A stretch of DNA of 64,000 nucleotides from Paramoeba atlantica (GCA_977017575.1 CDRNVI010000063.1:186001-250000), one strand, 5' to 3'. Positions 31,628-47,501 are shown, counted from the stretch's first letter. Numbers and translations are program-made. The notes: a model not told the origin generated them from the letters alone.

Positions 31628-34600
31628 TCAATATTGGTGAAACGCAGATACATCTTCCGGGCGTATGTTACAGCCCTTCAGCGTATTAAACAGTCGAATA
31701 GAGGTATCAAATCGTCGAGGGTGCGATTGCGGAGTTTTTCTTGCCGAACAAGGAACACCCTTTCCGGTCAAAATCCGGGGTTTGTCACTCATCCATATCC
31801 CTTCTTCGACAAGAAAAGTAAATACGTCTCTCATTGCAACACTAAAACTCACCAGACGTCCTGCAAGAGCTCGTGTGACGCGCAGAGACAGTGCCTCGAC
31901 GTTTGGTAGATCGCCTAAACGCAATCGACGACGAACAATCGCACGCCGATAAGGACTCAGATGTTTCACTTGGAGTTTGCGTATGTATTTCTGTGCGTTT
32001 TGTAATCTGTCAGAAGGAATGGCATTATCGAGAACAAATGGTGACACAGATCTATTGTGATCTCCAGAGTAGTTACTTTGTGAAACATTTTTTGTTGATT
32101 GCGCTTTTGATGGGACACCAAGTGCAGCGTTCATTAATTTGCGAAAATTGGAAAGTCCTTCAAAATCGAAGTCGGAGGATGCAAGGTCTGAAACTAAACA
32201 TCCCAGTGCGCCAGATGGTAAGTCCCCAATTCGCATTGACTTGTAACGCTGTAAGTAGGAAGATAATTCGCGTAATTCGTGCTCACTTTTTGAAAGATTC
32301 AGATGAGTGGAATCTAAACGTTGAAGTAGTGCATTTAATAAAGGCGTCCAGACGTAGTTCACTTTATTTGTTTCGTCATTTACAGAGCCTCGTCGAAGTT
32401 GTGATCTGATACGAGAAGCTAGGTTTAGTGAAACATTCTTCGAAAATCCGGGTAAGTCTGATGACTGAATATCTCTTTCGCTCTCTTGAAAATTAAACGT
32501 CCCGTCACGAAATTGGGTTAGCAGCTGTTCGATGCGACGAAGACGCCGCAGAAGAACGAGCACTGAGGCGCGAGTGCCCTCAACTACATCGTATATCGCC
32601 ACCCCCAATGAAGTATCTTTCGCGCTCAAGGGATTAAAAAAATGAGTTTGTAGAAAATGCGCAACGAGGCTAGTGGACCACGCCTCGGAACTCCTTGGTC
32701 CGTCTTCCCAGGAAACCCATTGCATCCAATGCGTAGAACTAGAGTTGAAATGCGAATTGAGCGCATAAAGCAGAGCATGCAGGCGAGAGGAAATATCTGA
32801 TTTCATGTTCAGTAATGCAACGTCGCTTGAATCACTTTGTTTTCCCCCAATGGCGGCTTCCTCGACAATCAATCTGTATACACCTTCGAGCGTTTCCCCT
32901 GCTAGATCGTTTTGTAAAACACTAGAAATATCTCCGGGAGATGTGATTTGTGACATTCTTTCCACAGAAAAATAAATTTGATCAGAAAGCGTGTTTACAC
33001 TTCGTATCCAAAGTTTTGCCAATAATTGCTTGCGCACTCCTGAGAAGGGTGCTGCATTGGTACGACCTGTATTCAGGTAGAGTAATGGAATCAGTTTTTT
33101 GTGGAAGTTATTTACTGTTTGATCGAATTGCCAACCGCTCAGACTATTCCCTCGGATAAAAGAGCGGTCGAATGCGTTCCATACAGTCAAGCCTGTACAT
33201 GACTCTTCACTTTTTATTGTCTGTAGAAAGGGCTCGATTTTATCGTCTTCGACTGGCCCGATACCATTCAATGATGGATCTATGGTGCTGGGTGCTGTAA
33301 AAAGCCGAAATGGAAGATCCTCTTTGCATAGTTCGAAATAAAAGTTTGAACGTGCATCAGAAATAGCGCGCAATAAATTTGAAATGGCAGCTTGATTAGG
33401 ATATGTTTGCTTTAACTGGCAACTTTCTATCTTGCCACGCGTAATACGTTCCCTGTATACCGGAAGGGCCCTTCGGTTTTGGTAACATGCTGATCTCAAG
33501 AAGTCATGATCTTCTTCCTTTCTTGATTTTCTCCTCGCTTGAGGAATCGTGTTGGCAGGATAAATTCTTGCGTCGGAAGTACGCAAACCACCCTCATCAT
33601 CATCTTCACATCGCATTGCCGAGCTTGAATCGAGTAGGGTTTCAAATTGCCGAATCGCATATTGAATTAAACTCAGCACTGGAGGCAACGTATTAGAAAA
33701 GAGGTCTACTATAGTTTTCGATACCATCTTTTCGCTGCAGCATGTCTGGGCAAGGTAATTTAAACGAACGAGTTCGTTCTCGTATTCACTTTGTAGCGCG
33801 AAGAGATCTTCTGCTACCCACGCCATGCCGGACTCCGAAGATGAATTCTGCATCTCGTAAATAGCAGGGGACGAATCTTGCGGTTCCTCACATAAGCTAC
33901 GGTAATAGTTCACTAACGATCCAGAAATCATGTTCAGAGCATGACGAAAAAACTGTATGCACTCAAAAACATAATCGAATACGACTCCATTACTACAAGC
34001 TGGGATCCGCTGTGACGGAATGTCATACTTATGGTCACGGCTGTCGCGTGCAGTGTCGAGAAGAAAAGAGATTAGATCTTTTCTGCCTCGAGCCGCGTAT
34101 CCGTACTGCAATGTGTGATGTTGTGCTCGACGCGAACTGGCGTCACTGTACCCTTTCTCTCTCATACTTTCTGCGCTATGCTGCAATTTTGCAAAAGCGC
34201 GGTGCAATTCATTCCAATCGGACGGGTCTGATGGGAGTGGATCCTCGAATGGATCTTCGATGTTTCGAAAACCTGGCGGCGTGTTGCCCGAAAGTAACGC
34301 TATCAAAAAGGTCGTACATTTTTCTATCGAACTCATGTGTTGCTTTGTGGTTAATGAATCAATCAGGAGAGAGTAGTCTGCCTGAGCACGTAGTAATTGC
34401 AACGTAAGCTGTACCCGAAGACGGCGCGCAATCTCGAAAGCAACCAAATTTTCTCGAACCATAAATTGTGTGAGAGCGTGGAGCACTATATTATGTGCTG
34501 TCGCAGTCTGGTTAAGCAACTGAGGGTCATCCTCTGCCGAGAGTGAAAATTTCGTGGGAGTTAAGCGAGGAGATATTTCTTCTTTTTCGGAGGCCGATAT

Positions 34601-34864
34601 TGCAATGACGTCCGTTTGATCCCGACAGCTTTCTTCATCAGACGGGGCGAACACAATTGGAAGAAGATACAGCAATCTGCCCTCCAGAATTTCCGTGGAA
34701 ATGGAGTCATCGCTAAGAGCTCTATGGAGTGTACGTAACTGTTGGTGTGAATAAGCAGGCGGAGACTGTCTATGTAACTCCTCGACTGCAGCTACAGATT
34801 CGGCTGAAAATAGAATCACTACCAAGCTTATAAACAGACAGGTACTGCGACACCGAATTATCAT
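31628..34864 (-). CDS. Orphan 1078-aa predicted secreted protein
   Basis: Long intact ORF with signal peptide MIIRCRSTCLFISLVVILFSAESVA. No recognised domain. Confidence 0.8.
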   Translation of the reverse strand: MIIRCRSTCLFISLVVILFSAESVAAVEELHRQSPPAYSHQQLRTLHRALSDDSISTEILEGRLLYLLPIVFAPSDEESCRDQTDVIAISASEKEEISPRLTPTKFSLSAEDDPQLLNQTATAHNIVLHALTQFMVRENLVAFEIARRLRVQLTLQLLRAQADYSLLIDSLTTKQHMSSIEKCTTFLIALLSGNTPPGFRNIEDPFEDPLPSDPSDWNELHRAFAKLQHSAESMREKGYSDASSRRAQHHTLQYGYAARGRKDLISFLLDTARDSRDHKYDIPSQRIPACSNGVVFDYVFECIQFFRHALNMISGSLVNYYRSLCEEPQDSSPAIYEMQNSSSESGMAWVAEDLFALQSEYENELVRLNYLAQTCCSEKMVSKTIVDLFSNTLPPVLSLIQYAIRQFETLLDSSSAMRCEDDDEGGLRTSDARIYPANTIPQARRKSRKEEDHDFLRSACYQNRRALPVYRERITRGKIESCQLKQTYPNQAAISNLLRAISDARSNFYFELCKEDLPFRLFTAPSTIDPSLNGIGPVEDDKIEPFLQTIKSEESCTGLTVWNAFDRSFIRGNSLSGWQFDQTVNNFHKKLIPLLYLNTGRTNAAPFSGVRKQLLAKLWIRSVNTLSDQIYFSVERMSQITSPGDISSVLQNDLAGETLEGVYRLIVEEAAIGGKQSDSSDVALLNMKSDISSRLHALLYALNSHFNSSSTHWMQWVSWEDGPRSSEAWSTSLVAHFLQTHFFNPLSAKDTSLGVAIYDVVEGTRASVLVLLRRLRRIEQLLTQFRDGTFNFQESERDIQSSDLPGFSKNVSLNLASRIRSQLRRGSVNDETNKVNYVWTPLLNALLQRLDSTHLNLSKSEHELRELSSYLQRYKSMRIGDLPSGALGCLVSDLASSDFDFEGLSNFRKLMNAALGVPSKAQSTKNVSQSNYSGDHNRSVSPFVLDNAIPSDRLQNAQKYIRKLQVKHLSPYRRAIVRRRLRLGDLPNVEALSLRVTRALAGRLVSFSVAMRDVFTFLVEEGIWMSDKPRILTGKGVPCSARKTPQSHPRRFDTSIRLFNTLKGCNIRPEDVSAFHQY

Positions 34865-35267
34865 GTCGTTAAAAAGTACAGTTAGACATGGTTTGGTGCA
34901 AAATGGATAGAAATAGGGTACAAAGGGACTAATAATTACTCTTGATGCAGTGGTAGTTGAATAGTGCGTATGAGATTATTGATACAGAGCTGATAACAAG
35001 AACAACATCGACGCGATAAAATACGCAGATTAATCGTGTGCGAGCAATTTTCTATAACATGAATTCACCGGGTGCTTACGTAATGTACCTCGCTTTTAAT
35101 AATTTCCATGCGCAAAGCTACGCATCTTTATCCCACAAAAAACAAGAGCTACTTTACTATCTATTTCATACAAAAAAACTGTACAACTACAATATATTCC
35201 TGACTATATTCCTATCGGTGTGTCCACAGACACGATTATTCGCACCGAATTACATACATAACACCTC

Positions 35268-38200
35268 CTAGTCATCATGCACTATAAAAGATCCCGTCAC
35301 GGAAAACGGGGGAGGGGCACTCGACCCGTTACTCGGACCGCCACGGGTTTCATTTTTCTTCTTTTCCTCCCCCTCCTGCACTGCCATAGTGCCTGTGGTA
35401 TCGGAACTTGTTGCGCCCAGCCCAGAGGAAGACACGGGGATGGCCTTGGCCGCACCTGGATGCCGCCGGGCTAAATTTTCCGACCCTGCACGTGGCGTGG
35501 TGGCCACTCGAGACTCCGGATCACACAACAACTCGAGCACTTGTGATTTCCATTTCGGAGTCTGCGGTAAGGGACTCTCGCCCTCGTGGGACGCAATCCC
35601 GAGCGCAAAATGCAGTACAGGGAGAACATGCTCGCGGTAGAATGTATTTCGCAGCGCCACATACCGTGACAGTGCCGGGGAGATGGCATCCGCAATATCC
35701 TCCGCCTGCTGCGCCCCTCCGGCCGACAACGTCGAGGCCTCCACCAAATTCGCGGACAGCAGCGCGGCCTCCCCGACTTTCTTCGCCTCCTGGAGCGCTC
35801 TCACCAACGTAGCTTTCTGCACCCTCATCTGGGACTGCTGCATCACCCCCCGCTTCACGGGGCGAGTCCCTCTCTCCACACTCTCCACCATACGATCCAC
35901 AAACGAGGCAAACTGACCTAAAAACCCTGTCTCTCGCCACAACCCACGTTGAATCACCATCACGTGCCGTAACACTTTCACCTTGGACAGCCCCGACAAA
36001 CTTTGTACCAACCCATGTCGAAACTGGTTTTGTACTTTTTTCGAATCCTCTACCGCTTTTTCCTTGTCTCCTTTTCGTCCTTCTTTTTCCTGTCTTATCC
36101 CCTCCCCCCTGACCACCACCGCCACCGGCAGCGGGATCGCCCCCGCCTCCCCGGCCCACGCGTGGAGCATACACGCCTTGATCTCCAGGTTGCGCCGGTC
36201 CTTGTTCCCGACCCCCACCGGGGGGCGCAGCGCGCGGAAGAGCTCCTCGGTGAGGTGACGACGGAACGGGGCGCCGTCCTTGCTGGGGGCGTTGCGGACT
36301 TCGGTGAGGACCTCGAGAAGGGCACGGAGACGGTGGCGCTCGAGCTGGGGACCGGTGAGAAGAGTGGAGGGGTGGAGGGTGGAGAGGCGGGAGCCCTTGC
36401 GCACGGCCCGGGTACGGCGGGAGGAAGAGGAGGAAGAGATAGAGGGGTTGAACAGATGAGAGGCGGTACGTTTGTGGTGTACAACAGTCGGTTTTTGGGG
36501 GGATTTGAGGTGACTGGGGTATCGGGAGGAGGGGGTTTCGGGGATGTCCTCACTTGCGGAGAGGGGAGTTGAGGAGGGGATTTTGGTGTCGGGTTTTGGG
36601 GTTTTGGATGCTGTTGCTTCTTCCCCTTCTAAGGCGGCATTGGTGTTGAGAGTTTCAAGGGCGACGGCGGTGGTGAGGGATTCTAGGACGGAGGAGACCC
36701 CGAGACGGTGAAAATCCAGAGCCAGGTCGACGACAGCTTCGACCTCAGCGCGAACAATGCTCTCGCGATGGGGTCCGAGTACGGGGGCGAAACGGCGGGC
36801 TTGGAGTAAGGGTGCGCGTAACGTCGCCTCGCTTTCGAATACGATGGGGCCGTCGTAGAGATCTTCCCACTCAAAGGCTTCTTGTAGAATGTTCTCCCGC
36901 AAGAGACGCACGTCCTCTTCTTTCGGGACGGACTCCGATACTCCTGACACGACCGAAATCCCTTGACTGGGTAGCACATTGAGAAAATCCCCCACAGCGG
37001 TGTCCCAGCGCGTATAAACCTGTGTACGACGTCGTTGGACGAGATCTAGTACATGGAGAAGAGAACGCTCATGAACGGGGGCTACTAAGAGCGATTTCCC
37101 TGACTCAATCTGGGCGGGGTTCATTTTGCTTTGTTCCACACGTAGCCGCACGACGACACCCAGGGCGTTTTGCAACTCATTGGTACCGTCCACCAAGGCG
37201 GCTGTGACGGAGTGGTGAAAAGTTTTCGCCGCGTCTCGGATAGGGTCCTCGAAGACGGAGCGCAGCGAGGAGGGGGCCTCCCGCTTCTCCTGCTCTGTTG
37301 CGGTACATATTTTCGTCTTTATAATATCCATGGCATCGTAGGTGTTGATTTCTGTTTTCAGAGCGAGCTCAATTTCAGAAAGGGGGACGCGAAGAAGGTC
37401 GCGCACGTGGGTGGCGGCTTCAAGTTCAGAAGCAGAGCCTGCGTCGTCGGAGGTGAGGGAGCGATCGTTTAGGAATTGCCGCGCTGTTTCGTGTTGGATA
37501 CCTACCCCGGACCACTGCCGAGAGGTTAACATTATTCTTCTCCACCCATTCGTGACTTTTTCAACACTCTCTGTGCGGCTCTCTGCTTTGTGCTGTGATG
37601 ATGCAAGCGACAGGATGTACGATGCCAGGCTTTTGATTTCGGTAAGTTGAGGAGCGAGAGTAAATTCTTCCTGAAACAGGGGTGGGACATCTTGCACATC
37701 AACAGCAGCACGGAGCACAATACTTTCCAACAGAAGCCGTCGTTCAAGGGCTCTGGCTACCCGCTTTCTGGTGCCCATTAAAGAGCGAAAAAATTGAGCC
37801 AAGCGCCTTCGCTTGCGAGCTGCGTTGTCCTCATCATCGTCGGATGCAGGGGAGGAGGAGAGTGAGCCTAGTTTTTCGAAGCCTCGGGGACCAAAAGCCA
37901 CGTAGCGCATCACATCTTGGAGTAAATAAGACTTACCGTCCGGCAACGCCTCTGCGTCGGCAGATTTGGGGCCTTGCTTCGCACAGAAAGCCTCCTCTTT
38001 TTCTGGGGAAATAAAAATTTCTTGTACAGCTTTTAGAGCTTCCTCCTCATTTAGTCGAGAGCCGTGTAGAAAAGCCATAGTTCGTGGGCTCTCCGTTTGC
38101 GATGATGATGGTTCTCCTGGGGATTTTAAATTGATCTTCGAAACAGATGTAAAACCCAAGGCCTGGCCCAAAGATGGAGGTTTAGAACCCTCCACGCCGC

Positions 38201-38594
38201 CTTCGCTGCTTTCGATCACATCGTCCACAACATCTTTCCTCGTATCACCGGGCGAGCAATTCGAAGAAGAAAACGGGAAGCACATGACGGAAGAAATGAT
38301 GCCACAAATTCTCTGAAGCACTTGTACAAAGAATATGAAAATTCGACGAAAAACGCTTACAGAAGGTGGAAAATCTTCCACCGATTCGCCATCGGTGGAA
38401 GATTTAAAGAACTCCTGCTCGTTAGAGACTCCGGAGCCGATGTCGTCAACTTCGGCCTTAGCAGAAACACGTTGAAGTGACGACAGGCTCAGCAGAGATC
38501 CTTTTAACGTTGGCCGAGGTACATCACGCCTAGGCACCAGACAGCACACCAGAAGAGCGACAGCGACATGAAACCAACGGCAACTAAGCTTCAT
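35268..38594 (-). CDS. Orphan 1108-aa protein with a signal peptide and an SSVxCFP N-terminal module
   Basis: Long intact ORF. Signal peptide MKLSCRWFHVAVALLVCCLV; motif at residues 76-107. Confidence 0.8.
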   Translation of the reverse strand: MKLSCRWFHVAVALLVCCLVPRRDVPRPTLKGSLLSLSSLQRVSAKAEVDDIGSGVSNEQEFFKSSTDGESVEDFPPSVSVFRRIFIFFVQVLQRICGIISSVMCFPFSSSNCSPGDTRKDVVDDVIESSEGGVEGSKPPSLGQALGFTSVSKINLKSPGEPSSSQTESPRTMAFLHGSRLNEEEALKAVQEIFISPEKEEAFCAKQGPKSADAEALPDGKSYLLQDVMRYVAFGPRGFEKLGSLSSSPASDDDEDNAARKRRRLAQFFRSLMGTRKRVARALERRLLLESIVLRAAVDVQDVPPLFQEEFTLAPQLTEIKSLASYILSLASSQHKAESRTESVEKVTNGWRRIMLTSRQWSGVGIQHETARQFLNDRSLTSDDAGSASELEAATHVRDLLRVPLSEIELALKTEINTYDAMDIIKTKICTATEQEKREAPSSLRSVFEDPIRDAAKTFHHSVTAALVDGTNELQNALGVVVRLRVEQSKMNPAQIESGKSLLVAPVHERSLLHVLDLVQRRRTQVYTRWDTAVGDFLNVLPSQGISVVSGVSESVPKEEDVRLLRENILQEAFEWEDLYDGPIVFESEATLRAPLLQARRFAPVLGPHRESIVRAEVEAVVDLALDFHRLGVSSVLESLTTAVALETLNTNAALEGEEATASKTPKPDTKIPSSTPLSASEDIPETPSSRYPSHLKSPQKPTVVHHKRTASHLFNPSISSSSSSRRTRAVRKGSRLSTLHPSTLLTGPQLERHRLRALLEVLTEVRNAPSKDGAPFRRHLTEELFRALRPPVGVGNKDRRNLEIKACMLHAWAGEAGAIPLPVAVVVRGEGIRQEKEGRKGDKEKAVEDSKKVQNQFRHGLVQSLSGLSKVKVLRHVMVIQRGLWRETGFLGQFASFVDRMVESVERGTRPVKRGVMQQSQMRVQKATLVRALQEAKKVGEAALLSANLVEASTLSAGGAQQAEDIADAISPALSRYVALRNTFYREHVLPVLHFALGIASHEGESPLPQTPKWKSQVLELLCDPESRVATTPRAGSENLARRHPGAAKAIPVSSSGLGATSSDTTGTMAVQEGEEKKKNETRGGPSNGSSAPPPFSVTGSFIVHDD

Positions 38595-38894
38595 AGGATA
38601 ATCTTTGTCTAGGCAAGCAAATATCCTTGATTTTGCTTTAACTGATAGAAAATACTGAGGATAAAAATTACTAAAGAAAGAATAGGCAATGCAGTGGCAT
38701 ACACTATTCTATACAATGCAAGTCATGCCGTTATTAAATTATATAAATTTTAGGTAGTGTGGAACCATTATCCCTTTTACTACAATTGTCTGTACAAAAC
38801 ACATCATCACAACATATTTTATGAGAGGAAGTGGTGAAATAAGAAATAAATGCACGCCTACTGCAGAGTGAAGTGAAGTGCAACCAGCGAACCA

Positions 38895-39818
38895 TTAGTT
38901 CTCTTCTTCAGGATTCGATGATCCGCTTCCGTCACTGGATAGAGCGCTAGTCTCCGTACCTGGGCAGTCCCCGAGTTCTACTTTTGGTTCGACTTCTGAA
39001 GGATCTGTTGAATGAGTTGTACTTTTTTTTATGGATGAAAAATCGAACTGGTGAACCTGTTCCGTCGTTTCTATATTTTCCCCACCAGACGTCGGAGGAT
39101 ACAACTTAAGGCCTTTTTGAGGTTGCTTGGGAGGTGAAAACCCACCCGGGTAATATGAAAAATTGGGTAAAGGAGCTGAAGCATGAGGCTCTAGGTAGTC
39201 CGGAGTCGTTTCTACTTGTGTTCGTGATGCTCCTTCAAATACAGGTTTATCATCTACGAGTGTGGAGCTCTCGTCCCCGTCCGAGTCACTCGTTCTCTGC
39301 ATTTCAGATGGCATTGTACTCTGATTCTTCACCGTAGACGGGGGTTGTTTTTGCGCAAGAGGAGGCTCGGCTTCGGAATACACTTCCCGTATCCCCTCCA
39401 TCATCTGGTTAAATTCAGTAACTAACTCGGTTACACCCTCCACGACACCGTCGAAAATTCCCATCGAGGAGGAAAATACTGTGGAGACGGAGCACACGGG
39501 GAAGCACCCGACACTGGACACGCAACAGCATAGATGGATGAGAAGACTAAGGAAGAAATGGAAAACAGTGCTAAGAATTCCAAGAGGTGGCGGCGGGGGT
39601 TCATCAGGCACGGTACGGTCATACCTTGGCAGGGAGCGCTGGTAGAGCTTCTGTGAGGAATCCGCGTCTGTGTTATATGCAATGTCCGCTACAATACGAT
39701 CCGCTTCAACCGAAGTGATGGAATGAAGTAAGGAAGAGCTTCCAATGATGGGAGATGAAAGTCCAGGGCAGATTGTGAGAAAAAGTACTGTGAAAGTGTG
39801 AAGCGAAGGAAAAAGCAT
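38895..39818 (-). CDS. Orphan 307-aa protein with a signal peptide and an SSVxCFP N-terminal module
   Basis: Start moved to MLFPSLH (ATG at 39818). It follows a polypyrimidine tract and AG (ttttcgtttttctccatattctttAG), a trans-splice-acceptor pattern. Confidence 0.75.
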   Translation of the reverse strand: MLFPSLHTFTVLFLTICPGLSSPIIGSSSLLHSITSVEADRIVADIAYNTDADSSQKLYQRSLPRYDRTVPDEPPPPPLGILSTVFHFFLSLLIHLCCCVSSVGCFPVCSVSTVFSSSMGIFDGVVEGVTELVTEFNQMMEGIREVYSEAEPPLAQKQPPSTVKNQSTMPSEMQRTSDSDGDESSTLVDDKPVFEGASRTQVETTPDYLEPHASAPLPNFSYYPGGFSPPKQPQKGLKLYPPTSGGENIETTEQVHQFDFSSIKKSTTHSTDPSEVEPKVELGDCPGTETSALSSDGSGSSNPEEEN

Positions 39819-40149
39819 GGAGGTGAATGCGCGTCTAAAGAATATGGAGAAAAACGAAAAGTTACTTGGCAATACGAAAAAGTGGAGTAAAAGGAATCGG
39901 TACATAGCAATCGGCATAAAAATGAGGTAACTTTTGTCCGCTGTGCAGCCGGATAGACACTTCATCCCAAACTGTGCGAGGGAATCGAATAAGTCCCTTT
40001 CTACACTTTATTATGGCTACTACTAACTTCCCGTCCGGGTTAATGTACCCCGCGGTACAATAATTAGCTACAGGTGCAATATAAATTCCGAAAATAGTGC
40101 AAAAAAATCTCAGAATACAATGGAACGCATTTTTTTAGATTTCGTATTT

Positions 40150-41180
40150 ATGCTCCGTACAATGCGTCCGCCTGCTGACGATGAGTTCTTCTAAGATGAA
40201 TTCTCCTCTCCGGGTTCTGAGAAGTACAGTACTGTATGTGGGTGGTATCTAGTATGTGGGTAGATCTCTGAGAAAGTGGGTGGTATTCCAGAGGCGATCC
40301 ACTTTCCTGAAAATGGTGGTATACAAGAGACATTGCCAATAACTGTGGAAGACCTGGGACCCAACGTAACAATGCGTGCATACCTTGATGTTGCCTTCCT
40401 CGGTCCTCCCACACTCGTAAAACGTGCGTATAGGATTTGTTACTGGCAGCATCTGTATACACGAGATAATGGATTTCTAAGTCTCACTCGTTCAAAACAG
40501 CACCGTATACTTCAGACTACAAGAGCGTAGTGTTCAACCTTGTAAAATCATCTGTCTGACCTCTAGAGTTCGTGTTTGCGATTTTGTTAACGGAACCCCG
40601 AGATAATGTACGATCTTCTACCTGATTTCTTCCCGTAAACCTCGAGAGAGAACTCACACAACTGTTGTTGCTGACATCGTCACACAGCGGATCTCGGCGT
40701 TTGTCCCCCGATGCGCGACGATCTTGGGACGGCTGGGCTTCACAGCCGGGACGACTTTTCCGCCTGTTATCCCCTTGAAACCGTTTCGGGGCATATTCCT
40801 TGTTCGCGGCCAGCGTCTGCAGACGAAGTCGTCCCATCGTGCTCAGTCGGATCGTTTTCTCCTGGGGGATATGTGAGCCTTGAGTATGGGGCAGAGTCCA
40901 GGTGCGGCCTACGCGAGCAAGATCACGCACGTCGCTGTGTTTGACACGGCGAAAGGCTTCTTGTACCATTCGCTGGGCAGGGTTGGAGCGGCCGCGGATG
41001 AGATTCCCTCGAACATGACGTCCAATGGCATAGGCCTTGGCAGACATGAACTGTACTGGATTGCGAATGTACATTCGATACGTTCTTGTAAAAAGTAAAA
41101 GTAGTCGCAGAAGTAGTAGAGTTCGTCAAAGACATGCTGCAAAAATTCAGAACCTTCATAAGACATATCTTCATATGAAA
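40150..41180 (-). pseudogene. Decayed ORF remnant, possibly with a Cys/His finger
   Basis: Overlapping broken frames, including ECGR...VCTHC...FHSYWQC. Several stops and frameshifts. Confidence 0.25.
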
Positions 41181-41889
41181 AAAAGCTTATGTAAACAACT
41201 GACTGTGCCCCCCCACTTATAGTGCCGCGGTTTTCGACCAAACGGCACTATAAGTCCCGGACCCAACATAGACGCTGCTATCAGAGAGCATGTAAAACCC
41301 GTAAATGTGAGGCACTCCGTATCATTCGTAATGGGAAAAATGGACATTGGTGAAAAAACCTATTTATGAGGATGCAAGAACGTAGATCCAAGAGTGGAAG
41401 GTGAAGGCAACAATACAAAAGTAATAAAAAACAGGAGAAAGAGAAAGATTTTTAGGCAAAACAAAATGCCCATCGAAAAAAAATTCGCCGCTTCGCGGCG
41501 GAAAGGCCGAATAAGACAGCGATCGGCAGAATATGGCAGAATACGGCAGAATAGCCAGTTGCCTCCCCTCTATATTAGGGCCTTATCATAAACACATTAT
41601 CAATGTAAACTATGCGATCGGGGAATCCATAGCTATTGGTTCAGCGAACCCACTGAACTACCAGCGAACCACCAGCGAACCAAGCGAACCACTTTTTGTG
41701 CTAAGCAGTACCACGCAGTAGAAATGGTTTACTCGATGTTACAAAGCAATATTCAACTTATCTTTTTTTCCTTATGTAGTTAGGGTAATTCATCATGGAA
41801 TAATCGTCTTTAAAAAATAGACTCTCTCGAGGTCAACGATGACATGGTATTTAGGACAGTAAATACATGAGTTAATTGACAGCTACGAG

Positions 41890-43561
41890 TTGTTTGGTAT
41901 TGCTTTGGACGGAGGCACGGATCAGGTTCTCGGTGAACACATCATGGTAGCGGTGCTCTATGTAGGTCCTCATCATTGGGTACTTCCGCCTATGTATCAC
42001 GAAAAACATGGCGCATTTAATGGTGTCCAGATCGGTGCACAAATTGTTGATGATCTTCGCCGCCGTTTAGGGGCGCAACGTCTGCGAAAATGGGCCTACT
42101 TCATAGTAGATGGGGCTGCCGTCAATCATGTGGCCCGGCAGGAGGCTGAGAACGAACTTGGCGAATTGTATCGACGATTGGGCATTTTGGGTGAGAGCGA
42201 TTTCTCATCAATGAGGAATGCGGTTCAAGGATCAATTGCTCAACGCACCTTGTACTCAGCGGTTGGCGCTGGTGACATGCATCGGCCATTTTCTCAACCA
42301 AGTTGCGAAGTCGGCACTAAAGAGTTGGAACACTACGAACCTCTTTCTACTTCGTAAACATTTCACTAATACTTTCTATAGTGGAGCGAAAACTTCAGCT
42401 CGGAAAGGTGAATTTCGGGGTATAGCTCTGGACTTGCGTCTTGAAGAACTTGGTGACGACGTCCATAAGGCCGCAAAAACTGTTTAATCCTACTACAGCC
42501 TTTTGGTGGGACATGGTTTAGGAGATGTCGAGAAAGAAAAAAAATTGATTTCTTTGACAAGCGCAGTTTCTCTCTTGAAACGTTTCGTTGAAACTCCCGG
42601 TGTGGAACTTTACAACGCTCTAGTTTCGACTGCAACGTATGAGCAAAAATATGAAGTCTCAAAAGCCCTGGTCCCCGAAATTTTAGAAGGTCTCGACAAG
42701 GCGCACAAAGCTCCTGTTCATGGATCCCCCAAGCTTTGGGGTGTGACTCGATGGGTATTGGACAAGTTTACCTCAATTAGCTACATTGCCAACAAGGCTC
42801 CGACGATAGCCCGACTAGTGGAGGCGCACTGCCGTAAGAGTAAGAAACCGTCTGCTTCAATAGAGCAATGCTGGGAGTGCTTAAAAACCGAAGGATCAAT
42901 CCAGGCTATCATCAATCAGGCTAACGAATTCTTAAAGCAGTGCGCCCCCATAAAAAATGCTTTGGAACTTTTTTCTGACGTCACAGTCACTCCGAGAGTG
43001 CTTAGTGTTTTCCCTGTTATAAACAACCTTCGCAAGCAAATGTCGTATAATGAACAGGTAGTAGAAGCAATTTTGGGCCATCGAGATCGCGTTCGCCGGC
43101 ATCATCTCCGGGATTTTTTTATGAATGTACAATGGTTAAATCCTATGTATATCCAGTGGTCAGTCCGGAACTCTGATGGGTCTTTCTTGACTTCTCTTCC
43201 TAGTACTGAAATAATGAATGCCATGTTGCGAACTGGCACTCCGATGTTTTCGATATCGGATAACGAATTTAATGATTTTCTTACGTGTGAAGATTATGGT
43301 TGGCGCGCTACACCGCAGTACACAGCGGCGACTTGGTGGGAAGAGACAGGAACACTTAGGTACCCGGAAATATATCGCGCAGCACGATGTTACCTCTGGG
43401 TTCGGCCGATAGTTACAGAATGTGATTCAGTGCTTCCCGTAATGGGACAGAAGTACTGCAGTCGACAGACTAGTATGTCTCCGGAAAAGATGGCAGTGTA
43501 TATTTTCGTACACTGCAATATTAAACGTTTGGATCCTCAAATCAATGCAATTGTTGATTGA
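41890..43561 (+). pseudogene. hAT-superfamily transposase, frameshifted and 5-prime truncated
   Basis: LDGGTD, VDGAAVN, CIGHFLN (CxxH), TRW, and C-terminal WWEE...YPEIYRAARCYL...TEC, spread over three frames. Confidence 0.85.
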
Positions 43562-44360
43562 GCTTACAATTTTTTTATTAAGATGTATCTTCACTGTTCT
43601 TTTCTTTCTTTGCCAAGGCTCGAGGATAAACTCGACTGACCAAAAAACAAATTAAAAAAAATAAAAAAATCCAGAAGGGTAATTCCCAGATTATTCAGGC
43701 GGCGGTACAAGATTGGTACTGCCGTGGTGTTAGGGGTAGGCTTCCGGTGGGCCTAGGGGGGTGCACAACAAAAAAAATACTTTGGGCGATGAAAACTAAT
43801 GCATGCAAGGAAATAATCCTTTTAGAGATAGAGATACTGTTTCTATAATGCTTTCGACCATCTTGAAGTTTAACACCTGAAGATCCGCGTTAAGTGGTTC
43901 GCTGTGTTCGCTATTTTGTTCACTGAACCAGCGAACACAGCGAACCAGCGAACACACCAGCGAACCAAAAGGTATAGAATCCATCGCCAAACACAAAAAG
44001 AGAATCTATTTACGACTGTCAAACGAATAATTTCAAAGATTACATACATACAATACTTTATGTATACGTGTCCGGGTCTTGTGATATAGGTGGGGTGCCC
44101 TCCCCATTTATCCTATATCAAACTTGTTTTTCATTTTTACTTTTTTTTGTATTTCTTTTTTTTCTTCTTTTTTGTTTTTCTTTTTTTATTGACGACCGCC
44201 CACTTTAGAGTCGCCTCTTGGGTCTCTTTGTTTCTGCTGAACGGTCGTGCCCTCGAGCCGAACAGTTGGGGCTTTAATATAACATATGAATCCTATGGAT
44301 ACCAAGATTCCTTTGCAGTTTTCCGACTAATGACTGGAGTATCACTGGAGAAGAGGTTCA

Positions 44361-45113
44361 TAGGGGGGTGCACGAAAATATGGGTGGGGGGTCAAAATTC
44401 TTATAATTCGGCCAATTTTGGAAAATAATAGCGCATTCGAGAGCTCTCACAGAGTTACGTGTCATGTGATATTACGTTTTACGTAGTTTCCAGGTATATG
44501 CATTCTCCTGAATACCTTAAAAAGGGCAACTGCAAGTTTTTTTTCCGGTAAAAAAAAGTTAGTATCCACAATTTCCACCTTTTTTCTCCAACACAATTTT
44601 TACGTTCGTTGGAATACTCTCTAAAGTCCTCAAAAATACATCGTATTGCGCCCCTTTTAATTTTTCGACCCCAGAAGCGATCGCTCGTCTCAAATCTGTA
44701 CGATTCGTTGGACAAAGCGAGTTTTTATGCTCGTCCATATCAGAATCGAGAATATTTTAACCAAGAGTATCCTGTGAGACGCTCTAAGTTGCCCACAAGG
44801 CGAATAACAAAATCTGCTCCGTTTCTGCACCTTTTTATTATTCGAATATGACCTTTTCTGGGGCATAGTACTGTATTAGGATCAAAAAAGTCAATAAATT
44901 CACAAAAAAAAGCATGTTTTTCAAAAAACTGCAGAATTTTGCACTTTGAAAAATCATGATTTTTTTAAATTGTTTAAAAAATTTAAAAATGCGGGAAACG
45001 CATTATCACATGACACTTAACTCTGTGAGAGCTCTCGAATGCGCTATTATTTTCCAAAATTGGGCGAGTTATAAGAATTTTGACCCCCCCCCATATTTTC
45101 GTGCACCCCCCTG
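44361..45113. mobile_element. Complete 753-bp MITE with TIRs of about 110 bp (family A, CAGGGGG terminus)
   Basis: 44361-44470 and 45005-45113 are near-perfect inverted repeats. The right end reads CCCCCCTG|TA. Confidence 0.9.
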
Positions 45114-45863
45114 TATATAAATTATTTACGACGTGCAAAGAACAGTCATTGTTTCCAGGAGCTTGTTGCACGCAATCAACATATGTGACCTGTAGTCGAT
45201 GATATCGTTCGTGCGATAATTTTAAGGTTTCCACAAAGCGATTTAAGTTGTCCATTGCTGCACGAGGAGCGTGTTGTATTAAACTGTCAAAGACTAGAAG
45301 GGTGTTGGAAGAGACCCGAACAAGTGAGCTTCGTAAAGGACCTGAAATCGCCGATCCACGAGTGTGCGCGTTGTCTAGCGTCTCGTTCTCGTTCGAATCG
45401 ACAGTCTTTGAAAGGATAAAGGGAACTATTAATAAAGTTTCAATGATTTCCATAAAAGAAAATATTACGCTACATTTACTCTACCTTTTTGGTAAAAAAA
45501 ATTGTTCAATTTTTTTTTCGGACAATTTGTTTTCTTCTAAACGGCACTATAAGTGGGGGGGTACCCCGGCACAGTAAATAGAAAAAGAAGTTTCTTATTC
45601 AGCGTTTTTCACTGAGCTTTCGGTCCTTATCTGTACGGCGGAAAACCTAGCTTTATTAACCTTTTGCTTGAAGTACTACATTACGAAAAGCGCAAAATGT
45701 ACATTCACAGAGATCTCCTTAACCGTCTAACGTTAGATGCTTTCTTTGTTGCGTGCTCAACAGAGCATCAAAACACGCAGTCTCTAGTCCCATCTACACT
45801 GTACAAAGAACTGACACCTGTCTACTTTATCGTGTTCCTACACGTATCTGTTCTCCTCTTCCT

Positions 45864-47501
45864 CTACACTTTTTCTTCCTCTTTGCATCCACTTTCTTCC
45901 TCTTCCTCTGCCTCATAGGTAAATCCCAACACCTCCGTGGTACCCGAGCCACTCCGTGACAGTACCACCTCCTCCCTCCACTGCCTCAACCCGGATGCGG
46001 TCATAGGCTCCAGCACTCCCTCCGGTGCTGCTCCGTCCCCCGGTACCCTACTAACTCTACTCAGCCCCTCCCAATCGATGCCCTGAAAAAAAGCATGTTT
46101 TTTCAACAAACTCGCCCCCGTAACCCTTTTCATCGGATTCTTCCGCAGCAACAGTCGTAACAAATCACATGCGGCAGGCGACAACACCCCAATCGGCAGT
46201 GCCACCGGTTCGGCTATAATTTTCGCAAAAACCTCCCCCGGGGTACTTCCCCCAAACGGAGGGGACCCCAGGAGCATTTCATACACCATGACCCCGAGGG
46301 CCCAGTAGTCCACCCCGGACCCATAGCCTTTTCGTCGAATCACCTCCGGCGCGAGATACAGCGGGGTGCCACAGAACGTGTACGCCTGCTGCGCCTCCTC
46401 GAGCAACAGCGTGCGAGCGAGTCCCATGTCCGTAAGCACACAGTGCCCTTCGGAATTAAAAACCACATTGTCGGGTTTAAGATCGCGATAGATAATCCCG
46501 TGGGAGTGGAGATGGGAGAGCGCACAGAGGAGCTGTGCCGCGTAGAGGGCAGTAGTGGGCTCCGGGAGACGTCGATGATGGGTGAGGAAACGGCTAAGGG
46601 AGCCGTTGGGGAGGTAGGGCATGAGGAAACATAATTTTTGGGGCGTCTGGAACGCGGCCTCGAGGCGGATGAGGAAGGGATGACGGAGCTGGAGAAGGAT
46701 TTGCCGTTCGGAGAGAATGAGCTTAAGGTCGAGAGATTCGGATTTGCGGATGATTTTGAGCGCGCTGATGCGGTGTGTGGTTTTGTGTTGAACTTTAAAG
46801 ACTTTTCCAAAGCTGCCTTCGCCTAATATACCGAGGGGTTCGAAATCTTGTAATGAAATTTTGTGACGGCAAGCCGCTTGACTGATTTTATTATTTCTCC
46901 CCAAGCTGTGATGACTAAACGGAGTTAGTGAATGTGTTGGCATGGGTTGCTTCTGGTTAACGCATTCGGTTTTGGAATGAATCGATTCCTCCACTATCTT
47001 AGTTTGACGCATCTCAATTGCTTTTTCAAAGTCAGGGGACGTATGCAAATTTTCATCCCCACTCTGAACGCTATTCTCGTGCATTTGTCCCTGAGAAGGA
47101 AAGTCCAATAAATATAAATTCGAGTCAGCAATTGCGGTTCGGAGAGAGCTGACCCACGAGCACAACAGTGCTTCATCGGTGACCCGTAAGCGGAGCTTTG
47201 ATTTACGCAACGGGACGCATAAGACGAATGTTTTCTCATCTCGGACTGATATGGAAGAGCCAGCCAGAGGAAGCTTTAAATACGGTGTCTTTCCATTCGA
47301 CCCTTTATAAATCTCTAGCGTATTTCTGCGTAGAACGCCCCAATGTGTGTTGTAAGAATTGAAAATTTTCCCGTTATGGATGCGAAGGTGAGAAGAAAAG
47401 CCCGTAAACTCACTGTTTGTTTTAGGAGCAGAAATTGTTCTAGTCTCCTGAGGACGACACTCCCATTTCTGATTCGTGCAAGGTAGAGAACACGCCGCCA
47501 T
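45864..47501 (-). CDS. AGC-family Ser/Thr kinase with an N-terminal PH domain (RAC/PKB-like)
   Basis: PH-like WGVLRRNTLEIY...SWVSSLR; GEGSFGKV, YRDLKPDN, DMG, FCGTPLYLAPE; C-terminal GFTY. Confidence 0.9.
   Translation of the reverse strand: MAACSLPCTNQKWECRPQETRTISAPKTNSEFTGFSSHLRIHNGKIFNSYNTHWGVLRRNTLEIYKGSNGKTPYLKLPLAGSSISVRDEKTFVLCVPLRKSKLRLRVTDEALLCSWVSSLRTAIADSNLYLLDFPSQGQMHENSVQSGDENLHTSPDFEKAIEMRQTKIVEESIHSKTECVNQKQPMPTHSLTPFSHHSLGRNNKISQAACRHKISLQDFEPLGILGEGSFGKVFKVQHKTTHRISALKIIRKSESLDLKLILSERQILLQLRHPFLIRLEAAFQTPQKLCFLMPYLPNGSLSRFLTHHRRLPEPTTALYAAQLLCALSHLHSHGIIYRDLKPDNVVFNSEGHCVLTDMGLARTLLLEEAQQAYTFCGTPLYLAPEVIRRKGYGSGVDYWALGVMVYEMLLGSPPFGGSTPGEVFAKIIAEPVALPIGVLSPAACDLLRLLLRKNPMKRVTGASLLKKHAFFQGIDWEGLSRVSRVPGDGAAPEGVLEPMTASGLRQWREEVVLSRSGSGTTEVLGFTYEAEEEEESGCKEEEKV

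Follow-up and report, generated by a model that had tools for sequence, protein, structure and literature searches.

Two adjacent orphan genes share an N-terminal helix module, most likely the trace of an ancient tandem duplication of a membrane-protein gene

What does it mean when two neighboring genes encode proteins that resemble each other over only a short N-terminal stretch? We asked this of two open reading frames, here called A and B, in a 64,000-nucleotide stretch of DNA (the window). An earlier note, made from the sequence alone, had described their products as orphan secretory proteins, proposing that a conserved bipartite leader (a signal peptide, a spacer, and then an amphipathic Cys-containing helix) is fused to different cargo. 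We found that A and B are a two-gene family, and that an ordinary event, the duplication in tandem of a membrane protein, is enough to account for all the data. Our favored reading, to which we assign a probability of roughly 0.55, is that A and B are old tandem paralogs in a kinetoplastid-type, probably Perkinsela-like, genome. Under this reading, both kept a common membrane-insertion module, formed by about the first 107 residues, and the remainder diverged beyond recognition.

The gene pair and its shared module

The ORF list confirmed both reading frames where they had first been described. A and B are neighbors in the same orientation, 300 nt apart, and are composed as follows:

35268..38594, minus strand: ORF A, 1108 aa, with a signal-like N-terminus, a spacer, the conserved helix, and about 1000 C-terminal aa that are all-alpha apart from disordered stretches
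38535..38594, minus strand: A residues 1-20, comprising an n-region with positive charges (K2, R6) and a hydrophobic h-region
38274..38369, minus strand: A residues 76-107, the conserved module, with PP leading into an amphipathic hydrophobic helix that ends in SSVMCFP
38595..38894, minus strand: the 300-nt spacer from the stop of B to the start of A, read from the sequence
38895..39818, minus strand: ORF B, 307 aa counted from the ATG at 39818, with a signal-like N-terminus, a spacer, the conserved helix, and an acidic, Ser/Thr/Pro-rich, disordered-looking tail of about 200 aa
39498..39593, minus strand: B's copy of the conserved module (residues 76-107), with the triplet C97-C99 and SSVGCFP at its end
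39819..39965, minus strand: the in-frame upstream extension of ORF B to an ATG at 39965, read from the sequence

The intervals 38274-38369 and 39498-39593 do encode the two 32-residue segments said to align, and the claimed ungapped identity was borne out. Residues 76-107 are identical at 13 of 32 positions without gaps (BLOSUM62 score of 77), and this match is the top HSP of the entire A-B comparison, lying exactly on diagonal 0. Composition-adjusted BLASTP gave the pair an E-value of 1e-5. None of 100,000 within-segment shuffles equalled the observed score, and none of 500 whole-protein shuffles preserving local composition reached the observed 79 (mean 38.6, standard deviation 4.4, maximum 60; z of about 9). 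Two unrelated hydrophobic segments could resemble each other by chance, as hydrophobic helices are alike in composition and the agreement at 24 of 32 second codon positions is largely due to that. However, the failure of either type of shuffle to reach the score, the composition-adjusted E-value, and the placement on diagonal 0 between adjacent genes together make coincidence extremely improbable. On sequence grounds, the modules of A and B are homologous.

Codon positions 1, 2, and 3 of the module agree at 12, 24, and 11 of 32 sites, respectively, implying that synonymous sites are saturated while the peptide pattern was held. With third positions randomized in this way, the duplication is old and selection acted on the peptide. 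The spacer (residues 18-75) is 58 residues long in both proteins, and its similarity was not significant (9 of 58 identical, p of about 0.03-0.06, with other diagonals equally good). Cys17 was confirmed in both translations. From residue 108 to the end we detected no similarity (z = 0.07), in agreement with the earlier description of the proteins as unrelated downstream of the motif. Hence B is not, in the literal sense, merely a truncated duplicate of A, an outcome that the earlier note had said would refute its proposal. A weak resemblance of A's signal segment to B's module (E = 0.28) was not significant and was set aside.

Coding status and the start of B

A's codon-usage index was 0.82 in frame versus 0.74 and 0.76 off frame, resembling the window's conserved genes. 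B gave a weak coding signal, with 0.79 in frame versus 0.76 and 0.78 off frame. The best evidence that B is translated is its peptide conservation with A, in frame and at the same offset. Short, 100% identical contigs from a possible RNA sequencing run, whose RNA status is a guess, fell inside A only, with none on B. Between samples, variants in A comprised 6 or 7 nonsynonymous versus 3 synonymous changes, which suggests that the body of A is weakly constrained. Separately, run X4 has a 4-nt insertion (CGAT) at 37461 that would disrupt A. All loose ends in that run begin or end in GATC, giving it the look of a Hi-C-type library, and we therefore treated the insertion as an artefact of a filled-in and religated GATC site.

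These observations bear on whether B is a relic, that is, a non-functional partial duplicate of A's 5' end joined to unrelated sequence that is open by chance. Its frame is barely distinguished by codon usage, the possible RNA run has no contig on it, and its tail is low-complexity and disordered-looking. Yet third positions in the module are randomized (11 of 32 identical) and the 13 peptide identities, as well as the same polar stripe along the helix, were kept, which demands long purifying selection on B's copy too. The 307-codon frame is also still open, and, counted from an ATG preceded by a pyrimidine tract and AG, the residue numbers of its module match those of A's. We regard a relic as very unlikely.

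B's 307-aa reading is nested in a longer ORF of 356 aa that starts at the ATG at 39965. The shorter reading is the one that gives the module the same residue number in both proteins. Upstream of its ATG at 39818, a pyrimidine-rich tract (39860-39837) is followed by an AG (39836-39835) located 16 nt before the start codon. We infer that 39819..39965 is probably 5' UTR or intergenic sequence rather than coding. The pyrimidine tract and AG cited previously as independent support for this start are indeed present, but that support is weak if the genome is Perkinsela-like, because only 27% of trans-splice sites in Perkinsela sp. carry AG (PMC5601477). Downstream of B, the 300-nt spacer must comprise B's 3' UTR and A's 5' UTR; UTRs in Perkinsela sp. 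are reported to be short, at < 100 nt (PMC5601477).

Helices and proposed membrane topology

Kyte-Doolittle profiles with a 19-residue window had exactly two hydrophobic peaks per protein, one at the N-terminus (residues 1-4 in A, 1-9 in B) and one at about residues 80-105. In both proteins a hydrophobic h-region directly follows a short n-region. When given the two-sequence leader alignment, AF2 placed helices at residues 4-19 and 78-104 only, and A's N-terminal helix spanned 4-19 or 6-18 across two models. The second helix is about 27 residues long with a pLDDT of about 75. Mean pLDDT was 38.9 for full-length A and 52.7 for the leader, too low for fold matches to carry meaning, and the full-length model was used for secondary structure only. 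By eye, B has a plausible signal-peptidase site (G19-L20-S21 / S22) and A has at best V16-C17-C18 / L19. For A, visual inspection gave no clear site by the (-3,-1) rule. Its residues 1-20 may form a signal peptide or else a signal anchor.

The module helices differ in hydrophobicity and share their orientation. A's helix has a mean hydrophobicity of 0.40 and a hydrophobic moment of 0.50, versus 0.62 and 0.28 for B, and the two moments are aligned (74 degrees in A versus 69 degrees in B). A common polar stripe runs through R/T84, Q/S91, R/H95, G/C98, S102, and C105 (A/B where they differ), and the helix ends in SSVxCFP. Kyte-Doolittle maxima were 1.91 for A and 2.13 for B. Rough insertion free energies were about +4 kcal/mol for A and about +0.4 to +1 kcal/mol for B, which is marginal. 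Judged by these values, B's helix appears adequate for a membrane span. A's helix is borderline, and its Q91, Q94, and R95 may make it too polar for halting transfer alone.

Since what has been conserved is a hydrophobic helix of 27 residues, a membrane anchor is its simplest reading, and both products are likelier to be membrane proteins than the soluble secretory proteins first proposed. In the mechanism that we favor, the N-terminal signal sequence would deliver A and B to the ER. Next would come about 58 residues of acidic, unstructured spacer, kept in length but not in sequence, and then the helix at 78-104. This helix is only marginally hydrophobic enough for the membrane and would act as a stop-transfer anchor, and its polar side, where a basic residue would lie at mid-membrane, could dock a partner helix. 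The partner would be the protein's own N-terminal helix, the other protein, or one common to both. One or more boundary cysteines might be S-acylated, and A's 1000-aa helical part and B's 200-aa acidic tail would stay cytoplasmic.

The distribution of cysteines and sequons fits this arrangement for A. Cysteines are concentrated in the first 113 residues, which contain 6 of A's 10 and 6 of B's 7, and the 995 residues of A that follow contain only 4 Cys and 2 N-x-S/T sequons, consistent with a cytoplasmic location for its bulk. By comparison, 17 Cys and 8 sequons occur in the neighboring 1078-aa secretory orphan. Candidate S-acylation sites are the conserved C97 and C105, together with C109 in B and C113 in A. 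Counting against the proposed topology, the charges run counter to the positive-inside rule for a cytoplasmic C-terminus. Neither protein fits the expectation of basic residues on the cytoplasmic, C-terminal flank of a type I helix: residues 105-125 hold 2 K/R versus 4 D/E in A and 0 K/R in B, the latter therefore having none in the 21 residues after the helix, and A's R83-R84 lies on the N-terminal side.

Some of these values would also suit secreted proteins with a latent membrane-active helix, in which the signal is cleaved, transfer is not stopped, and the released protein associates with or inserts into a membrane later, as in GRA proteins. A's high moment and low mean hydrophobicity, its insertion energy of about +4 kcal/mol, and the lack of basic residues directly after B's helix are all in line with this route. 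In contrast, B's helix suits a membrane span, both by its Kyte-Doolittle maximum and its insertion energy, and A's C-terminal 1000 residues look cytosolic given their few Cys and sequons. We consider there to be only a slim chance that A and B are such proteins.

Relatives and comparison with known systems

A modular leader would be expected to recur, and the earlier note had proposed looking for it with a profile, taking a search that returned no other proteins as a refutation. In the window, an HMM of the module found A (E = 1.9e-23) and B (3.9e-22), with the next best match at 0.06 and no third copy in any of the six frames. The 1078-aa signal-peptide orphan next to the pair (31628-34864) is without the module. 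JGI metagenomes were scanned with exact degenerate DNA patterns based on the module, and none matched. Full-length A searched with phmmer against 1.84 billion representatives returned only fragments of itself, although a module-only match would probably fall below threshold, making this weak evidence on other carriers of the module. A word search with B found no relatives, neither protein belongs to a Pfam or NCBIfam family, A has no PDB sequence match, and ESM-Atlas gave no usable match. Their description as orphans thus holds across Pfam, NCBIfam, the protein searches, PDB for A, and ESM-Atlas.

The only other contig carrying both genes, ENA ERZ24900291 (L001), was rejected as an independent copy. 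Its DNA is the same apart from 30 single-base insertions, with 0 substitutions, indicating a noisy assembly rather than a second strain. We considered an AKT-like kinase (45864-47501) as a synteny anchor, and its best full-length relatives were 34-35% identical and from diplonemid or unnamed transcriptomes. It had no close kinetoplastid matches, so no synteny comparison could be made to positional orthologs. A search of Rfam and a scan for bacterial-type promoters and terminators gave nothing relevant.

These searches weigh on the possibility that signal peptide, fixed spacer, and Cys helix make up a transferable address, used beyond A and B, that sends cargo to the symbiont surface or host cytoplasm. 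The C-terminal parts are without similarity, and the helix was kept at an unchanged distance from the start codon, as such a leader would predict. The organism is also probably a Perkinsela-like endosymbiont, and Perkinsela resides in its host's cytoplasm within a single bounding membrane, with secretion of proteins to the surface or host having been proposed (PMC5601477). However, only two copies were seen, adjacent to each other, with none elsewhere in the 64-kb window and none matched by exact patterns in JGI metagenomes, and the phmmer search, for what it is worth, added no other. Moreover, the disordered or fast-evolving tails of true duplicates soon lose similarity, and unrelated cargo is unneeded. 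We therefore judge a modular leader unlikely. The architecture described earlier is real, homologous, and followed by dissimilar C-terminal parts, but the pattern does not require a modular leader, since tandem duplication and divergence explains two adjacent copies without a third in the window.

A bolder form of this idea, in which the signal, 58-residue spacer, striped helix, and SSVxCFP are an address label of the Perkinsela lineage, borne by many unlinked proteins bound for the bounding membrane or amoeba cytoplasm, seems quite unlikely. If true, it would be a previously undescribed type of eukaryote-in-eukaryote effector leader. Returning to tandem duplication of a membrane protein, which the common module most likely marks, A and B are lineage-restricted and only one polar-faced membrane helix was held by selection, offering a handle on a shared partner or sorting step. 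If the organism is a Perkinsela-like endosymbiont, its secretory-pathway proteins are candidates for contact with the amoeba host, and we know of no contact protein between such an endosymbiont and its host. The main value of the pair lies in an annotated lead and a seed profile for a whole-genome search.

Known sorting signals were also compared with the pair. Residues 1-75 of A and B contain no PEXEL/HT motif (RxLxE/Q/D, expected some 15-30 residues past the signal peptide), the nearest being R-I-V-A-D in B with V in place of L. A GPI-addition signal is absent, as both proteins end in hydrophilic sequence and lack hydrophobic peaks past residue ~105. Neither protein has the Met-Gly start, soon followed by Cys, of the SH4-type (HASPB-like) dual-acylated kinetoplastid proteins, which carry no signal peptide, as A begins M-K-L-S-C and B begins M-L-F-P-S. 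In concept, A and B resemble Plasmodium PEXEL/HT proteins, in which unrelated cargo carries a signal peptide and, a set distance further on, a short conserved stretch. In A and B, however, the conserved element is a 27-residue hydrophobic helix rather than a short protease-cleavage motif.

Toxoplasma dense-granule (GRA) proteins, made by an intracellular eukaryote and acting at the host interface, offer an analogy only. They too are lineage-restricted and otherwise unrelated to one another, each combining a signal peptide with a single internal helix that is amphipathic or hydrophobic. A and B come from a different phylum and have no sequence relationship to them, and secretion or post-secretory insertion would be hypothetical here. 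Immune-receptor/adaptor pairs include type I single-pass proteins with a juxtamembrane S-acylated Cys and a polar or basic transmembrane residue used for assembly. A and B share with them a signal-like segment with one later hydrophobic helix, cysteines at and beyond the end of the helix (C105 in both, plus C109 in B and C113 in A), and a mid-helix basic residue at the same position (R95, H95). Unlike those pairs, their ectodomain would be only ~55 residues, their charges depart from the positive-inside rule, and acylation and partner binding are putative.

Lineage-specific tandem families of surface or membrane proteins are known from kinetoplastids, such as the MASPs and mucins of T. cruzi, in which a conserved N-terminal signal region precedes a divergent body. 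Similarly, A and B are adjacent paralogs in a polycistron, conserved in the hydrophobic part that would target or anchor them, with fast-evolving bodies that lack relatives outside the lineage. They differ in that only two members are seen and the C-termini are hydrophilic without a GPI-type signal, and the conserved piece is not the signal peptide but an internal helix ~58 residues past it.

Two neighbouring genes and the segment they share

ORF B lies 300 nt upstream of ORF A, and both belong to the minus-strand array. The gene downstream of A is a third orphan, without a Pfam or NCBIfam family, so three secretory-pathway orphans follow one another:
39818-38895, minus strand, ORF B, 307 aa
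38594-35268, minus strand, ORF A, 1108 aa
34864-31628, minus strand, orphan of 1078 aa; strong signal peptide at the N-terminus, 17 cysteines, 8 N-x-S/T sequons

A and B each have two hydrophobic peaks, at the N-terminus and at approximately residues 80-105. The cysteine at residue 17 in both proteins and the gapless alignment of residues 76-107 (the module, which ends in SSVxCFP), both described in the earlier note, were confirmed. Identity across the module is 13/32 and its BLOSUM62 score is 77, a value matched by none of 100,000 within-segment shuffles. BLASTP of A against B produced a single significant HSP (79-110 in both, composition-adjusted E 1e-5). The top ungapped segment of the full comparison scored 79 on the diagonal of equal residue numbering, and no whole-protein shuffle preserving local composition reached this score (0/500; mean 38.6, sd 4.4, maximum 60). 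Scaled to every protein pair of the window, we infer that the pairwise E becomes about 2e-3, to which equal offset and adjacency add. Together, the shuffles, BLASTP E, equal offset and adjacency argue for homology rather than shared hydrophobicity, and make a chance resemblance of the two segments very improbable. Judged by sequence, the similarity is homology and the observation is statistically solid. The 1078-aa orphan has neither the module nor any similarity to A or B.

Within the module, codon positions 1, 2 and 3 agree between the A and B DNA at 12, 24 and 11 of 32 codons. Third positions are thus randomized, implying that the duplication is old, that recent gene conversion is absent, and that no DNA or RNA element is conserved. 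By this codon pattern, the conserved entity is the peptide. The spacer preceding the module (residues 18-75) is equally long in A and B without significant similarity: 9 of 58 residues are identical ungapped (p 0.03-0.06), diagonals -6 and -3 are equally good, and gapped local alignment gave z 1.8. From residue 108 onward, B has no similarity to residues 108-1108 of A (z 0.07), in agreement with the view that the two proteins are unrelated beyond the module. B could be a remnant of a partial duplication, but this is unlikely given that selection has clearly acted on its copy of the helix for long.

Starting at ATG 39818, B has 307 aa, although its frame stays open upstream as far as an ATG at 39965. 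A polypyrimidine tract and AG, previously cited in support of the downstream start, are indeed present upstream of ATG 39818, but their weight would be reduced in a Perkinsela-like organism, since just 27% of the acceptors in Perkinsela sp. are AG and its UTRs average < 100 nt (PMC5601477). The better argument for this start is that the module then has identical residue numbers in A and B.

Several features were observed upstream of B. A stretch of about 50 nt at 40030-40080, 210-260 nt upstream of the ATG of B, is a short dispersed repeat with an internal palindrome (TGTACC..GGTACA): further copies, 90-95% identical and differing in their flanking sequence, are present on several other contigs of the same runs. 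The approximately 5.9 kb at 39966-45863 lack a convincing minus-strand gene despite lying inside the minus-strand array, and hold the following:
41642-41691 and 43938-43967, clusters of short CAGCGAACC-type repeats
41890-42357 and 42503-43561, plus strand, ORFs without a Pfam family
44383-44489 and 44986-45092, inverted repeat with 107-nt arms (91% complementary) separated by 496 nt, resembling the termini of a small mobile element

Relatives, further carriers and variation

We searched six-frame, stop-to-stop segments of at least 30 aa from the 64-kb window with a module HMM and filters off. Only A (E 1.9e-23) and B (E 3.9e-22) were recovered as carriers, the next best match having E 0.06, so the additional carriers envisaged by the earlier note did not appear there. 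Neither protein has a Pfam or NCBIfam family. A word-indexed search of 5.8 billion proteins matched solely fragments of the A and B genes, called on a noisy contig that represents this DNA, and phmmer with full-length A, which uses no word index, found only self-fragments among 1.84 billion representatives and nothing among PDB sequences at E up to 1. Their status as orphans, in the sense of belonging to no family described by sequence, therefore held as far as these searches reach. An ESM-Atlas feature search gave no usable match for A or B, and none of 599 matches to degenerate module patterns in JGI metagenome contigs was upheld by tblastn.

The noisy contig (ENA ERZ24900291, ctg2777l) corresponds to 34521-46572 of the window, from which it differs by 30 single-base insertions but by no substitution. 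The insertions split A into three called genes and cut B to a 189-aa fragment, so the database proteins of that assembly are fragmentary. As the caller began B at Met119, its module-bearing N-terminus is missing from the database as a called protein. Moreover, a match confined to the 32-residue module would probably miss E 0.001 in the 1.84-billion library. For both reasons, the negative searches do not establish that carriers are lacking elsewhere. A modular sorting or export leader carried by further genes is possible, though unproven and rather less probable: the shared module that prompted this idea is real and homologous, but a duplication retaining a functional membrane helix is the more parsimonious reading.

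Every run covering the stretch is stored as contigs. One 2015 run, whose RNA status is a guess, contains five short contigs that are 100% identical to the stretch and fall within A, with 0/5 on B or in intergenic DNA. By our own arithmetic, random placement would confine them to A with a probability of about 0.06, which is a hint at most. Across other samples, A carries 3 synonymous and 6-7 nonsynonymous variants (835 synonymous and 2489 nonsynonymous sites). The resulting ratio of about 0.7, from very few events, suggests that constraint on the body of A is weak. The module is free of these variants, with one low-depth covering run showing no difference and the variant-rich run covering other parts of A. 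We rejected a 4-nt CGAT insertion at 37461 in a DNA run (X4) as a frameshift allele because it sits at a GATC site. All loose ends in this run begin or finish at GATC, consistent with our reading of the insertion as a filled-in, religated GATC, that is, a Hi-C-type library junction kept in Logan contigs. Such junction variants should not be taken as frameshift alleles.

The gene array and its source

The window is a single long minus-strand gene array. Recognized genes include two leishmanolysins (GP63), a family-A DNA polymerase, ribosomal protein uS5, a GT4 glycosyltransferase, V-ATPase subunit d, an AKT-like kinase, an RNase PH homologue, lipoyl synthase and calreticulin, among others, and none of the recognized ORFs requires an intron. 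This arrangement is that of a kinetoplastid-type genome, and the leads point to a Perkinsela-like endosymbiont in a Paramoeba-type amoeba. The array also contains a Tc1/mariner-like DNA transposon or part of one:
5671-4910, minus strand, ORF of 253 aa with Tc3-type HTH and DDE_3 transposase domains

The AKT-like kinase (45864-47501, minus strand), which has a PH domain, has full-length relatives at most 34-35% identical among 5.8 billion proteins, a diplonemid (Hemistasia) sequence being one of them. A shorter match, in the kinase domain alone, carries the label PhM_4, presumably a free-living prokinetoplastid strain. Among the best 120 matches listed, none was a close orthologue from a trypanosomatid or from Perkinsela CCAP 1560/4, and the lack of a close trypanosomatid relative implies an organism remote from well-sampled kinetoplastids. 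UniProt contains Perkinsela sp. CCAP 1560/4 proteins (PMC10903960). If that proteome belongs to the searched library, it has no detectable orthologue of A.

A putative membrane anchor

AlphaFold2, applied to the alignment of the A and B leaders (N-terminal segment, spacer and module), predicted helices at 4-19 and 78-104 with disorder elsewhere and pLDDT of about 75 at residues 81-100. A single-sequence model of A, usable for secondary structure alone (pLDDT 38.9), has the same two helices and an all-alpha body disordered at 108-180, 660-750 and 1025-1108. On a helical wheel, polar residues share one face in each protein, and the hydrophobic moments have nearly equal directions, 74 degrees in A and 69 degrees in B.

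Residues of A and B by helical-wheel position
Position 83/84: A R83, R84; B S83, T84
Position 87: A I87 (not polar); B H87
Position 91: A Q91; B S91
Position 94/95: A Q94, R95; B H95
Position 98: A G98; B C98
Position 101/102: A S101, S102; B S101, S102
Position 105: A C105; B C105

The helix of A is amphipathic (mean hydrophobicity 0.40, moment 0.50) and that of B membrane-like (0.62 and 0.28). A crude and approximate sum on the Hessa 2005 scale put the insertion energy of A at about +4 kcal/mol and that of B at +0.4 to +1 kcal/mol. By these estimates, both are marginal transmembrane helices, a class that usually relies on a partner helix. The leader holds 6/10 cysteines of A and 6/7 of B; C97 and C105 are conserved, and further cysteines, C113 in A and C109 in B, lie shortly past the helix.

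We consider it slightly better than even (about 0.55) that A and B are old tandem paralogues sharing a membrane-insertion module and anchored with their C-termini in the symbiont cytoplasm. The N-terminal segment would send both proteins to the ER and the spacer would be translocated, whereupon helix 78-104 would halt transfer and act as the anchor, so that the large C-terminal parts would remain in the cytoplasm. Since this helix is the sole part kept by selection in both copies, it presumably has a role beyond anchoring. Residue 95 on its polar face is basic in both proteins, and this face probably packs onto another helix, which may belong to a shared partner or to the other protein of the pair, or may be the uncleaved N-terminal helix of the protein itself. 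S-acylation would be plausible for the cysteines at the cytoplasmic boundary. A cytoplasmic body of A would fit its few cysteines and sequons (4 and 2 in the 995 residues after residue 113, versus 17 and 8 in the adjacent 1078-aa secretory orphan). Against this mechanism, the charges flanking the helix break the positive-inside rule, and the helix of A may be too polar for stop-transfer. Secreted proteins with a latent membrane-active helix, by analogy with GRA proteins, would be an improbable alternative. We lean, by a small measure, toward an orphan pair of signal-anchored membrane proteins.

Lineage-specific tandem families of membrane or surface proteins in kinetoplastids likewise keep a hydrophobic targeting part while the body drifts. 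In contrast to GPI-anchored proteins, SH4-type proteins and PEXEL-type export leaders, A and B have no GPI signal, SH4 acylation start or PEXEL-type motif, respectively. Were A and B secreted, GRA-type proteins would be the alternative analogue. For signal-anchored A and B, the functional analogue would be single-pass proteins with a juxtamembrane acylated cysteine and a polar transmembrane face for assembly.
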